Shown here: piece after piece, positions 6,941 through 12,708 of the stretch
Numbering within the stretch: position 1 is the stretch's first letter
Layout: each line of letters begins with the position of its first letter
Assembly (NCBI GenBank): GCA_965644295.1
Contig: CBFFRP010000200.1
Span: 1 to 64,000, forward strand
Source: Paraphysomonas bandaiensis
Taxonomy: Eukaryota; Protista; Chrysophyceae
Direction of reading: 5' to 3'
Length of the DNA stretch: 64,000 nt
Notes under the pieces: generated by a model
What the model saw: the letters and a program-made list of their open reading frames with translations, nothing else
Told to the model about the DNA's origin: nothing
The model's database searches: none
Translations under genes and position numbers: made by a program

Positions 6941-9900
6941 CTAAGACTTTGAAGCCGCATCTATAATGTGCATGACAGCTGGCTGATCTTGAAGGCTACC
7001 ATGTGCAGAAGAGAAAACTTCACGATATTGTTCATTTGATGATAAGTACTTGATACATGATATGACGATAACTTTCGTTTCATCTGTGTACTGCGAACCA
7101 TCTTCTAAAGCTTGTGCAAACGCCACCAGAATGCGAGGAAGTAACGAAAGGGCGTCAGGATTTTGATCCTTCACAAGGCCAGCTAAACACGTATATATAG
7201 ATAACCCTTCACCAAAGTCTGAACGAAGAGGAAGGGCAGAAATTAGCACTGGCAGTACCTGCCCTAAAGGGACGGCAGACGGGGCTGCCATAATCATCCT
7301 TGCCACAGCGGCCAAAGCGTTGTCAATGTCAGCACCACCAACATCTGAAACTACCTCTGTAGACTCTCTCACACAAAGCGGGTAAATCCATTGCAATATT
7401 TGCAAAATAGAAGGGGATAACTGATCCATTGCGTTCTCACACAAAACACCAAGTGCATAAGCAGAATTCCGTCTAACATTTTCCATTGAATCCGCAACAC
7501 CGGCTCGTACGACTGGAAGAAGAGTTTCTGCATACATCGCTCCAGCTGATGGGCCAACTGCAGACACAACTTCCGCAAAACATCCAATTGCCATTGCTCG
7601 GTCTGTATACGAGCGATTCTTTTTCGTAAATTTCAACAATGGTTTCGCAAATTGCTCGAAATATGGCAAAAAGTCTGCACCTACAACCTTCGCTAGGGTT
7701 GCTACTAAATCACACACAGCATCCATGACAAGGTTGTCATGGTCTTGATCATCATCCTCTTCTTCATGCTGAAATACTGTTTGACACTTTGCCTTTTCCT
7801 TGAGAAGAGCAAGAATATTGTGCATAATGAGGTCACCATAGGTACGTTTGCTTTCTTCCTCAACCAACGTCAAACACGCAACTCCAAGCAGACCGACACA
7901 GCTCTCTAGCCCCTCAATCGCATACGCAGCAGGAAGCTTCTCGACGTCAGATACCATAGCGTTAATGTAAGTTGAGAACACTGCTTCCGATACACGCTTA
8001 GTGACAGGGTCAATCTGAACAAGTTTTCCTTTGGCTGGCGGCTCTACCATTCCATTTGACAGGCATGATACCTTTAAAAAGTACTGCAAATTGAGCAATG
8101 CCTCTGCTCTAATAATTCTATGAAAGCTCCACAAAACTCCGTTTTGTTCAGCGAGCATAACATTTAGTGTGTCCTCCAAGTAAGGAAAGAAGGCGGCACC
8201 AGTGTGATCAGCCAATGAACCAATAGCGCAGATCGCCGCTTTCTTGGTGTTGATGAACCCTTCATCAACCGTCAAGTGGTAGTTTTCTTCTCCGCCCTCA
8301 TCTTCCTCATCGTCGTTCAACGAGTCAAGAGTGTCAGGCTCAGCAGTATACGGAGAGAGCTCTGGCTGACGAATAACGTCAAGTAAATGCGGTACCAAAT
8401 GTGAAAGGTATTGATCAAATACATTTTTCATGACCTTGGCACAGTTTGCAATGTACGTGTAAGAGTATTCTTTTAACTCGTCCTCATCAATCTGAACTCC
8501 TTGCATCGTCGATTGCATACCCATTTCGAAGTATGGAGCGAAGTGCTCACCACCGAGAGCAACAGCGATATGACCCAGACACTCTAACGCCCGTCCACGA
8601 ATACTGAACTGCATCGGCTCACTTGAAAATAGGACAGGTTTCAAAACCTCCACAATGGCCTGAGACAGCATTCCATTAAACAACATGAAAATACAGCAGT
8701 TCTAATAAGAAGTAGTGCACATAAAATCTCAGCAAGAACGCAGCGTGTGCATCGTCACGGTTGTCAGATACAACGATTCGCATTTTCATCACAGATTGTC
8801 GACGAAAGACTCTCACTAAATAGTACTTACATTCGCATATGGCAAAAAGTGTATTTCAGATGCCACTGCTGTAGCAGATATAGCCGCAAGAGCCATTTCC
8901 TGTGTCGACTTCTTCGGGTTGTGCAGAAGGCGTATCAGACGCTCCATCAGCATAGGAAGAAACGGAAGCAGAGTCTGCGACTGCAGATTCTCACAGAAAT
9001 TTTCTAGCACGTAACAGCTGGTACCCTGAACCGTATTGCGAGGGTCATCCAGCGCAGCAAATACAACTGGGAGTATGGCCTGATGGTGGTAAAGGATCTC
9101 TGGCTGACAGTGTTCGGAAAACTGACCAAGAGCAAAGCAGGCGCTTTCTCTGACAAAATACTCTGCGTCCTGCACCGCATGAAGTAATCTAGGAAGAATA
9201 GCTGGTAGCATCTCTTTTATGGCATCGCAACACCCTTCAGAAATGATTCCAAGGACTGCACACCCTGCCTTGCGCATATTTTTATCAGCTGATTCCATAC
9301 ACTGAGAGCATATATTCAGCGCTGGGCCGACAAATGCTTTTGATGAAATGCTCAGGGCCATGCGGTCTAAACACATTTGGGCAATTTCCTGGGACTCCAT
9401 AGCAAGAGTGTAATCCTCATCGTCGTCATCGTCCTCCTCCTCCAGGGGCCTGTTTCGTGTCGTAAAGAGAGTACCAGCACCAGAGCAGTCGGATTTAGCA
9501 ATCGCCTCGACAAATACTTGCAGGATCGGCTCAACCATATTTAGCTTCGAGAGCAGTTTCGGACGCAGTTCAATAATGCTCATTATTGTCTGACCAGCTG
9601 CACTTCGGGTAGAAGACTCTAAGTCAAAGTTGCCCATAATGGAGATGGTGAAAGGTACAATGTACTGCAATTCACACTCATATAAGCTGGCATAGACTAG
9701 CAAACACCCACCTGAACATGGTCGTTAATGAGAGGGAGGTCCATGGCCACAGACTCCTGAAGCATTTCAAGTCCTTCAGTGACGACTTCCTCATCTCCCG
9801 TCTGCAGACACTTTTGCATGACCTCTAGTAAAGGGGAGAGTACACCTTTTAAGTGCATAACTTCTTCAGAGTCAGAGAGAGCTCCTGCTCATAAAACTAT

Positions 9901-10615
9901 TACCATTATAGTAGAATTAAAACCTATGAACTAACCAATAAAAACGGTAGCCGCGCTCATGGCTGCCACAGCTACGTCATGTGACGCATCGCCACATCCG
10001 GCAAGAATCATATCAGAAATGGTTTTAGTGTGCGGCTTCAGAAAGTCTGATACAGATTCGGTCTCTGCGAGCTGTACTTCGTCAGAAAAAGCAAGATATA
10101 CACCGATTTACAAACCTGTCCTAATAAACTGAAACACAACGCCCTCATGTTTGTTTCTTGATGTTGCATAAGCTGTACAAGTAGTGTAAACAATTCGGGC
10201 CAGTCGTTTTCAGTTGAAAACACATTCTTTGCTAGTGTTGCAATCACGCCAGCTATAGCCGTTCGAACTACCTTCTCTGGCTCTGACACAACGATGCGAA
10301 GAAGTAAACTTTTTATTTCTGCTTTGTTTTCATCTTTGCATTTAAAGTAGAGAGAATTAATGCTGCACTTCAAGTAAGCAAAACACTCTGACAGAGAACT
10401 GATATTTCTCACCGTCTTTTAAGAATTAGAGCCGACATATGGCGAACGTTTACATTACTGGAGTGTTCGAGTTGACGAAATAAGAGTGGAATGCATTGAG
10501 GATTTTTTAAAAAAGGTTTTAAAATGGATTCTGCTTGTCTGATTATCTCTGTGTTGTTGGCTCCCAGGGCTTCCAGCACCTGTTCCAGCTGATGAGCATC
10601 AGTTAAATCCGTCAT
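6941..10615 (-). CDS. IPO4: Importin-4 (karyopherin-beta, HEAT repeats), 6 exons
   Basis: N-terminal IBN_N-like segment (IRQAESIL..VRHMSALILKRRI), DWPELF, VRESACFALGQFSEH, acidic loops, VRRNSAYALG and DNALAAVARM. GT-AG introns at 10363-10412, 10072-10115, 9885-9935, 9665-9711 and 8660-8830 keep the frame. Confidence 0.9.
8725..8797 (-). ncRNA. Intronic box C/D snoRNA, predicted 2'-O-methylation guide for 5.8S rRNA
   Basis: On the minus strand: terminal stem AATCT/AGATT, box C GTGATGA (8786-8792), D' CTGA (8764-8767), C' GTGACGA (8752-8758) and D CTGA (8729-8732). The guide CGCTGCGTTCTT is the reverse complement of 5.8S AAGAACGCAGCG. It lies in the 171-bp intron of IPO4. Confidence 0.85.
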
Positions 10616-11091
10616 GCTTCTGGAGGTCTCCGGGTTATAATACCACTATGTTGACAACTGCTTATGTATAGCTGTCACCCAGTGTAAGTATATAACTATG
10701 ACAACAAGATCGATGTGATGGTGGAGAGATTTGTGGCCTATGAGTGTATGAGTGTATGAGTGGCTGAGGGGCGTGAAAAAACAGCGAATGGACACGCGAA
10801 GATGAATGACAAACTACAGTGTAATACAGTGTAATACAAAGTACTATAAGAGATTTGTCGGAATGAGTGGTGAGAAAGGATTCACTAATTTTAATGCATC
10901 AAAATCTTATGTCTACGCCAAAAATATACTTTTTATTAAAAATCCATGATATTATGGAAGCTCACTTGTAGGCACAAAAATAAGATGGACAGGAGTGCAT
11001 GATACTAAACAGCACAGTTCAGATTGATAATTCACACAACTCCAATCCAATCAAGACCAAGCTTTGTACAATATATTCAGATTACTGTGAT

Positions 11092-12708
11092 ATGGGACGC
11101 GGAAAATTCAAGGGTTCATGGTCAAAAAAAAGGAAGTCAGATGCGACTGATGAGGCGGAGACAGACGACAGGAAGGAGTTCACTGAAGTACACGGTGGAA
11201 GTTTTTCTCTTGAAGAGGTGAAGGCCATGGATGAGTATAAGAACAGAATTGAACATGATTCTGCCCCGAAGAGGAAGTATGCAATTGCTTTGGGCTACTG
11301 TGGTTCGAATTATCAAGGTACATATTGATAAATTGTACCGATTTTGTCACTTATGTTTTCTCTGAAAGGTTTGCAGACCAATCCAGGAGCCATCACAGTT
11401 GAAAGTGTACTGGAGCGGGCACTTCTTTTGTGCGGTGGTATTCAAGAGCATAATTTCGGTAATCTACAGAAAATATCATGGACGCGAGCAGCGCGAACTG
11501 ATAGGGGGGTACATGCCATCGGCCAGTGCTGCTCCATGAAGCTCACTGTTCCCATCGGAATGGAGGCACGTTTCATTGAAGACCTCAATAAGTTTCTTCC
11601 CTCTGACATTCGAGCCCTTGCTCTTACACGTACTACTAAGAGCTTTAACGCTAGAATTCACTGTTCTCACCGTCGGTATCAGTACCTCCTACCGACCTAT
11701 ATGCTTGAGAATGAAGGTGTAGTCGCGCAATTACTGTCGGCAGAACGCGAGAAACAGGGGCCTGTACTTGATGCAGGACGCGGGGGCCGATACGCCGAGC
11801 CAAATTCTCGAGAGTTTCTTGCTCCTGAGGGCTTGCGCGCTGTGCGGTCTGCCCTGCTCGGGTACCGCCTCCCTGCAGTGAAGTTGCAGGCGCTGAAGGA
11901 TGCCCTTAAAAAGTACGAGGGTACTCACAGCTATCACAATTTTACTTCCTCAAAGGTGACCGGTACCTCCTCAGAGAGTAGTTTGCACCGATATATGATG
12001 GAGATATCAGTTACCGATCCTTATGTAGTTGATGAGGGAGTCGGACAGGGTATAGAATGGGTCAGGATATCTATACTAGGACAAAGCTTCCTACTAAACC
12101 AGGTAAGTACACTGGCTATGTAATGTACATATGTAATTGCATGTTGTTGATTTGCTGTACCATTAGATCAGGAAAATGGTTGGTCTTGCTGTTGATATGG
12201 TGAGAAAAGAGTGTTCCGATCTCAGTGTGATGGACAGATGCCTGTCACCGTCAAATAAAGTAGACGTCCCAATGGTGCCAGGCCTGGGACTATACCTGGA
12301 CGAGTTGCATTTCGACAAATATAACATCAAGATTGGTTTTGAAGAAGAGAAAGCGGAGAGATCAAAAAAGCGGAAAGTGGAGAAAGAGTCTGCGGCTCCT
12401 GTCGAGGAGACCGAAGAGTGTGTGGAAGACACAAGCTACTCTGTGCGTAAAATATTTTCCATTGCTGCCTCACTTATTATTTTTCAGACTGTTGGAAAGC
12501 TGGATTGGACATCTGACCCATCACTACAACCTGCTTTTGATAGATTTCGCCAGGAAGTGCTATGGCCACATATGTATGCGCAGGTATTGTGCGATGCTAC
12601 CCACTTGCTAAGCTAACGTAGTTGTTGCAGGAACACGACGCTCTTGATTTCTTGTACTATTTGGACTATTTAAGAGTGTCAAACTTCAGCTATATACCTA
12701 AAGAGTAG
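11092..12708 (+). CDS. PUS1: tRNA pseudouridine synthase, TruA/PUS1 family
   Basis: Motifs LGYCGSNYQGLQ, catalytic ARTDRGVHA, YEGTHSYHNFT, GQSFLLNQIRKMVG and PGLGLYL. Introns at about 11318-11368, 12103-12167, 12443-12487 and 12584-12630. Confidence 0.9.

Follow-up and report, generated by a model that had tools for sequence, protein, structure and literature searches.

A conserved, predicted box C/D snoRNA with a 5.8S rRNA guide in an importin-4 intron of Paraphysomonas bandaiensis

Introduction

An importin-4-like gene of the chrysophyte Paraphysomonas bandaiensis contains a single intron that is 3.5 times the length of its neighbours, and the question raised by this locus is what the long intron carries. 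A first reading of the DNA, referred to here as the earlier note, had proposed a box C/D small nucleolar RNA (snoRNA) that guides methylation of 5.8S rRNA. The locus was analysed within a window of 64,000 nt, which is the whole stretch of DNA under study, and was compared with the rest of the genome and with importin-4 relatives from environmental assemblies. The segment at 8725-8797 is very probably an intron-encoded box C/D snoRNA and a predicted guide for 5.8S rRNA.

Results

The host gene and its long intron

The host is an importin-4-like karyopherin gene of six exons (6941..10615; the gene, its introns and the snoRNA all lie on the minus strand), delimited by Pfam matches and by exon mapping against P0001, a transcriptome-derived Paraphysomonas protein (MMETSP1103; taxid 36769). 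The open frames of the gene match the Pfam domains TPR_IMB1, TPR_IPO5, Importin_rep_6 and HEAT, the nearest database relatives of its exons are named importin-4 by JGI, and the exon lengths, with exons searched one at a time, sum to a coding length of 1103 codons. P0001 is 99% identical to both exons flanking intron 5 and joins FLPYAN to AIVEVLK at the intron borders. Because this protein reads across the gap, 8830-8660 is a spliced intron. Intron 5 (8660..8830) begins with GUAAGU, ends with CAG and is 171 nt long; by-eye mapping against P0001 placed the other host introns at 10363-10412, 10072-10115, 9885-9935 and 9665-9711, with lengths of 50, 44, 51 and 47 nt. Divergent from the importin-4 promoter region, the window contains a gene at 10999-12616 (plus strand), in which an open frame gives a match to tRNA pseudouridine synthase (PseudoU_synth_1, E = 2e-7); the presence of an RNA-modification gene as a neighbour of importin-4 is probably a coincidence.

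Box C/D architecture of the intronic RNA

Within intron 5 lies a single predicted mature snoRNA of 73 nt (8725..8797), identified by sequence reading and scored at 85 bits by R1, a covariance model built from the orthologues described below. The snoRNA is in sense orientation to its host; 33 nt separate it from the 5' splice site and 65 nt from the 3' splice site. From 5' to 3' its layout is AAUC, U, GUGAUGA, 18 nt, CUGA, CAACCG, UGACGA, UGCACA, CGCUGCGUUCUU, G, CUGA and GAUU. These blocks correspond to the 5' half of a terminal stem (AAUC, 8794..8797), a C box (GUGAUGA, 8786..8792), a region containing the D'-side element AUCGUUGU (8770..8777), a D' box recognised by sequence reading and alignment (CUGA, 8764..8767), a C' box 6 nt further on (UGACGA, 8752..8757), the box-D guide CGCUGCGUUCUU (8734..8745), a D box that is invariant in the orthologue alignment A3 (CUGA, 8729..8732), and the 3' half of the terminal stem (GAUU, 8725..8728), which forms 4 bp with AAUC. 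The earlier note had described one long intron of 171 bp among short ones, with C, D', C' and D boxes in order, a terminal stem and about 65 nt to the 3' splice site; all of this was borne out, with coordinates, boxes and guide exactly as it had given them.

The folding energy of the snoRNA was no better than that of shuffled sequence (z = -0.54), as is usual for box C/D RNAs. No Rfam family matched the window at its gathering threshold, and searches in E-value mode returned generic sub-threshold box C/D matches only. The top Rfam score (snR52, sR2, snoR117, Afu_294 and SNORD53_SNORD92 tested) was 18.8 bits against a threshold of 45 for the window and 25.9 against 46 for the orthologue in L052. 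Genome searches, including a search with R1, gave a copy number of one, with the runner-up match scoring 30 bits. A second genomic near-match to the guide, ACTGCGTTCTTGCTGA on contig C478, is without an upstream C box and was set aside as a chance match.

The 5.8S rRNA target and its register

The box-D guide forms 12 Watson-Crick pairs with the 5.8S segment AAGAACGCAGCG, in a duplex beginning at the second nucleotide upstream of box D. This segment was found in every 5.8S copy fetched from the genome (Rfam 5.8S match, 146.8 bits). The fifth guide nucleotide is opposite the A in GAUGAAG[A]ACGC, which is position 42 when the first base of the Rfam 5.8S match is taken as 1. Both the pairing of the 12-nt guide with conserved 5.8S sequence and the methylation target predicted from the fifth-nucleotide rule had been put forward in the earlier note, which named a 5.8S without the target sequence as grounds for rejection; the pairing proved perfect against the genome's own 5.8S, and the predicted register was confirmed at the level of sequence. 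A reading of the locus as an antisense 5.8S pseudogene fragment was rejected, given that the complementary blocks occur in the order opposite to that of a colinear antisense copy and identity ends at 12 nt.

To place the target among known sites, its distance to the G equivalent to Gm79/Gm75 was counted in this genome's 5.8S and amounts to 32 nt. The same 32-nt spacing presumably leads to Gm79 in Arabidopsis and to Gm75 in human 5.8S, which would make A47 the same nucleotide as the target; the plant 5.8S target presumably has a U where that of Paraphysomonas has a C. The predicted target appears to be the site known as Arabidopsis Am47 (guide snoR9), and is probably also Neurospora Am42 (guide CD29). 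RiboMeth-seq has located Am47 in Arabidopsis 5.8S, and AtsnoR9-1 and AtsnoR9-2 have been assigned to it via the 3', box-D-side guide (PMC8583080), in agreement with the earlier note on snoR9. A review gives the Am47 site for tomato, tobacco and a green alga and lists none for human or yeast (PMC11542601). In Neurospora, CD29 guides 5.8S Am42, as verified by primer extension, and its authors give plant snoR9 as the counterpart (PMC2780460). A literature match in Leishmania concerns Am479 and is irrelevant to the 5.8S site.

The rDNA of this assembly is spread over many contig ends (G000 contigs C68, C188, C653, C525, C545, C543, C516, C420, C438 and C669), with the LSU present in pieces only. 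The assembly also has 5.8S copies with lower scores, at 116 and 63 bits, and on C669 a divergent SSU copy of 483 bits; these could be degenerate copies, or of organelle or contaminant origin.

Expectation by chance

A collection of short motifs may arise in a long intron with no functional RNA behind it, and the frequency of such coincidences was therefore estimated. The target 12-mer AAGAACGCAGCG is found at a single place in the window, the snoRNA, against a chance expectation of 0. When both strands of the window were scanned on a small scale, three skeletons of C box, D box and stem came up; one of the three, the snoRNA, has a perfect 10-12-nt match to the organism's own rRNA beside box D, and the reversed-rRNA control gave none. 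Arithmetic from these scan counts yields about 0.003 coincidences of skeleton and rRNA match per window, or a few skeleton-plus-12-mer coincidences across the 62-Mb genome. As a few are expected per genome, statistics alone are not decisive. Against an assembly by chance stands the conservation of guide, boxes and stem in the same intron of five genes whose protein identity is as low as 51-55%, together with flanks that cannot be aligned while the stem shows compensatory change. On this evidence, set out in the next section, a chance origin is extremely improbable, and the reading of the segment as a snoRNA is retained.

The snoRNA in orthologous introns

Contigs encoding related importin-4 exons were collected from environmental assemblies. 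When these IPO4 introns were checked for conservation, as the earlier note had proposed, five related genes were found to keep the same guide in the same intron. The carriers are L050 (protein P0011, 54% identity to the window), L052 (P0018, 53%) and L053 (P0013, 51%), in which the snoRNA is full length, and L049 (P0012, 54%) and L051 (P0009, 55%), in which the contig begins within the snoRNA. Each has CGCUGCGUUCUU (UGCUGCGUUCUU in L053), followed by 1 nt and CUGA, in the same intron and just upstream of the orthologous exon. In addition, a 324-nt gap before the exon on the P0010 contig suggests another carrier.

The guide is invariant in all six orthologues, window included, except for the 5' U in L053, which creates a G-U pair. 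The C box of L053 reads AUGACGA, and that of the other three full-length copies RUGAUGA. The variant C' box UGACGA is complete in L050 and L052, where both members of the D'/C' pair are found, and its 3' end is kept in the truncated L049 and L051; the D'/C' pair is degenerate in L053. Conservation in the alignments is limited to the snoRNA, and the intron flanks are unalignable. Across the four full-length copies, all 16 positions of the terminal stem pair, with AU, AU, UA or CG as the outermost pair. This is suggestive of compensatory change, although with four sequences it is not statistically strong, 47 of 500 shuffles pairing equally well. R1 gave 75-87 bits for the full-length orthologues and 39-41 bits for the truncated L049 and L051, compared with 17-35 bits for unrelated environmental snoRNAs with the same guide. 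Taken as sequence evidence, these comparative data are decisive for the snoRNA.

The host intron has a length of 182 nt in L052, 164 nt in L053 and more than 289 nt in L050. Between the D box and the 3' splice site there are 69 nt in the window and 78, 48, 107, 112 and 100 nt in L052, L053, L050, L049 and L051, respectively; in mammals there is reportedly an optimum for the distance of a snoRNA upstream of the 3' splice site or branch point, described by Hirose and Steitz in 2001. A motif GUGCA(A)CU lies about 7-10 nt 3' of the snoRNA stem in the window (8711-8718, minus strand), in L049 (36-43) and in L051 (34-40), and is absent from L050, L052 and L053. The motif might be left over from shared ancestry, or might be a signal for processing.

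Relatives without the snoRNA

Five relatives have no snoRNA at this position. In P0003, P0006 and P0007 (57-61% identity) and in P0025 (45%) the intron position is kept, with introns of 41-88 nt that hold no snoRNA, and P0002 has no intron and reads through the site. An R1 search of the sequences of the snoRNA-less relatives gave no matches, and no decayed relic of the snoRNA was found in the 88-nt intron of L016. The five non-carriers include the relatives closest by protein identity, and carriers are as far from one another as from non-carriers; P0011, for instance, is 76% identical to P0018, 49% to P0013 and 51% to P0003. From this distribution we infer that the association of the snoRNA with the importin-4 intron is probably old and was followed by several losses. 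Since five relatives are without the snoRNA at this position, it is dispensable at the importin-4 locus. That importin-4 has a link to ribosome biogenesis is a soft argument in support of the host pairing. In one snoRNA-less relative (L015:88-841, minus strand), importin-4 adjoins the genes for Mak16 and ribosomal protein L28e, both ribosome-related.

The same guide in other environmental snoRNAs

Metagenomic sequences were scanned with a pattern consisting of a C box, 28-58 nt, the guide CGCUGCGUUCUU, 1 nt and CUGA. The scan returned 25 loci that belong to about six unrelated sequence families, all with the same guide in the same register. A terminal stem of at least 4 bp, which the pattern does not require, was recognised by eye in 22 of the 25. 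Given 25 loci in about six families, the same 5.8S guide and register is, judging from these predicted snoRNAs, widely used among environmental eukaryotes.

Two of the contigs showed further features. In L028 (449-928), an unrelated box C/D snoRNA bearing this 5.8S guide is present as three tandem copies at 203-nt intervals, and its D' guide motif CAACCAGGUAG is common to the largest metagenome family (L021 and others). L042 (2974-3065, minus strand) has a match to snoZ159/U59 of 38.9 bits against a threshold of 39; the 5.8S-guide snoRNA on the same contig lies about 175 nt away, which suggests a snoRNA cluster.

Complementarity on the D' side

A target for the 18 nt before the D' box was sought in the SSU, the 5.8S and the available pieces of the fragmented LSU, and none was convincing; the best match of the D' guide, a 10-bp run that includes two G-U pairs, fell among those obtained with shuffled guides. 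A shorter complementarity exists next to the box-D target. The 5.8S segment ACAACGAU, which pairs with the D'-side element AUCGUUGU, lies one nucleotide (G) 5' of AAGAACGCAGCG. The core AUCGUU of this element is kept in L050 and L052, and their differing extensions also match 5.8S: in L050, UUUCAUCGUUG pairs with CAACGAUGAAG over 11 bp, including one G-U pair, and overlaps the guide target, and in L052, UUAUCGUU pairs with AACGAUGA over 8 bp, including one G-U pair. L053 is without the D'-side element. At least three of the four full-length orthologues show this two-sided complementarity to 5.8S. In a predicted fold, the D'-side bases can instead pair with the C' region of the snoRNA itself, GACGAU. 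The D'-side region also includes, at 8776-8784 (minus strand), AAUGCGAAU, which is sense-identical to a 9-nt stretch of the genome's own 5.8S, UAAUGCGAAUUGC; this may be a coincidence.

Three functions were considered for the D'-side element. The first is a double guide, in which the D' guide would also direct methylation about ten nucleotides upstream in 5.8S, at AC[A]ACGAU. The 8 bp of the window do span positions 3 to 10 upstream of D', and so include the fifth. However, 8 bp is short for a guide, position 5 of L050 pairs with a neighbouring C at the edge of the duplex, and position 5 of L052 is unpaired. As the register relative to D' shifts among species, a second methylation is unlikely, and with the best match of the D' guide in the available rRNA pieces no better than those of shuffled guides we give the double guide very little credence.

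Secondly, the snoRNP may act mainly as a chaperone or processing factor of the pre-rRNA, clamping a contiguous 21 nt in the 5' part of 5.8S, with methylation secondary or absent. The 5.8S segments complementary to the two halves of the snoRNA adjoin one another, the D'-side element of L050 pairs over 10-11 bp into the guide target, and such roles of modification guides are documented (PMC13487219). Yet the box-D guide is exactly in register for a methylation known in plants and fungi, and the D'-side pairing is short, is missing in L053 and competes with the intramolecular alternative at the C' box. A mainly chaperoning role is consequently improbable, if somewhat less so than a double guide.

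The third and preferred function leaves the box-D guide as the methylation guide and gives the D' side a supporting part, the AUCGUU core most likely adding base pairs with the stretch of 5.8S that directly precedes the target on its 5' side. Extra base-pairing elements of this kind have been described in yeast and human snoRNAs, where they occupy the second guide region and pair beside the target, sometimes overlapping it (van Nues et al. 2011, PMC3116282).

Discussion

The comparisons made here indicate that the long intron of the importin-4-like gene holds a real, conserved and previously uncatalogued snoRNA, and that this is an ordinary guide RNA aimed at a known site. As a box C/D guide, the snoRNA would be transcribed within the importin-4 pre-mRNA, and after splicing exonucleases would trim the intron back to the snoRNP core, which would assemble on the kink-turn that the C and D boxes form together with the 4-bp terminal stem. 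The box-D guide would pair with 5.8S AAGAACGCAGCG in the pre-rRNA, and fibrillarin would methylate the 2'-OH of A42, opposite the fifth guide nucleotide. A more far-reaching proposal, which we consider speculative and rather doubtful, is that the snoRNA forms a bipartite clamp, in which both antisense regions bind one continuous stretch of about 21 nt of 5.8S and either boost methylation or hold the 5' part of 5.8S during ITS1/5.8S maturation, and that the site, having guides in stramenopiles, plants and fungi alike, was already methylated in the ancestor of eukaryotes and lost this modification in yeast and animals. If the clamp were true, the rRNA strand would run past the terminal C/D kink-turn.

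Literature searches yielded little on stramenopile snoRNAs; for a chrysophyte, the present locus provides a guide with good support together with a predicted 5.8S Am site. It also offers an example of a pairing between snoRNA and host intron kept across deep divergence, with an intron of about 40-90 nt in some snoRNA-less lineages. The result is of use for annotation, for studies of snoRNA gene mobility and for explaining outlier intron lengths, and brings no change to the known working of box C/D guide RNAs.

Several known RNAs resemble the Paraphysomonas snoRNA in part. In the consensus of Rfam family RF01506 (Afu_294, Aspergillus fumigatus), CGCUGUGUUCUU precedes a box resembling D', and the register is that of the Paraphysomonas guide. 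However, the snoRNA scores 13.2 bits against a gathering score of 43, and its C' box and D guide align to the C box and D' guide of Afu_294; membership in this family is ruled out by the sub-threshold score and the misassignment of boxes. Neurospora crassa CD29 is likewise intron-encoded and a guide for 5.8S methylation (PMC2780460). Unlike the Paraphysomonas snoRNA, CD29 is 101 nt long and SCARNA9-related, and uses its D' guide for 5.8S and its D guide for U2 snRNA Am31, so the resemblance is confined to the guide. On the D' side, the snoRNA resembles the yeast and human snoRNAs with extra base-pairing in that its second guide region holds a conserved putative element, out of methylation register and complementary to rRNA beside the target, known elements being 4-11 bp long (PMC3116282); it differs in that the same bases can pair with its own C' box region. 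Outside the boxes and the guide there is no detectable sequence similarity to Arabidopsis snoR9 (AtsnoR9-1 and AtsnoR9-2), yet the Paraphysomonas snoRNA is like snoR9 in being a box C/D RNA whose box-D-side guide is directed at 5.8S rRNA, with the adenosine in GAUGAAG[A]ACG as what appears to be the common target (PMC8583080).
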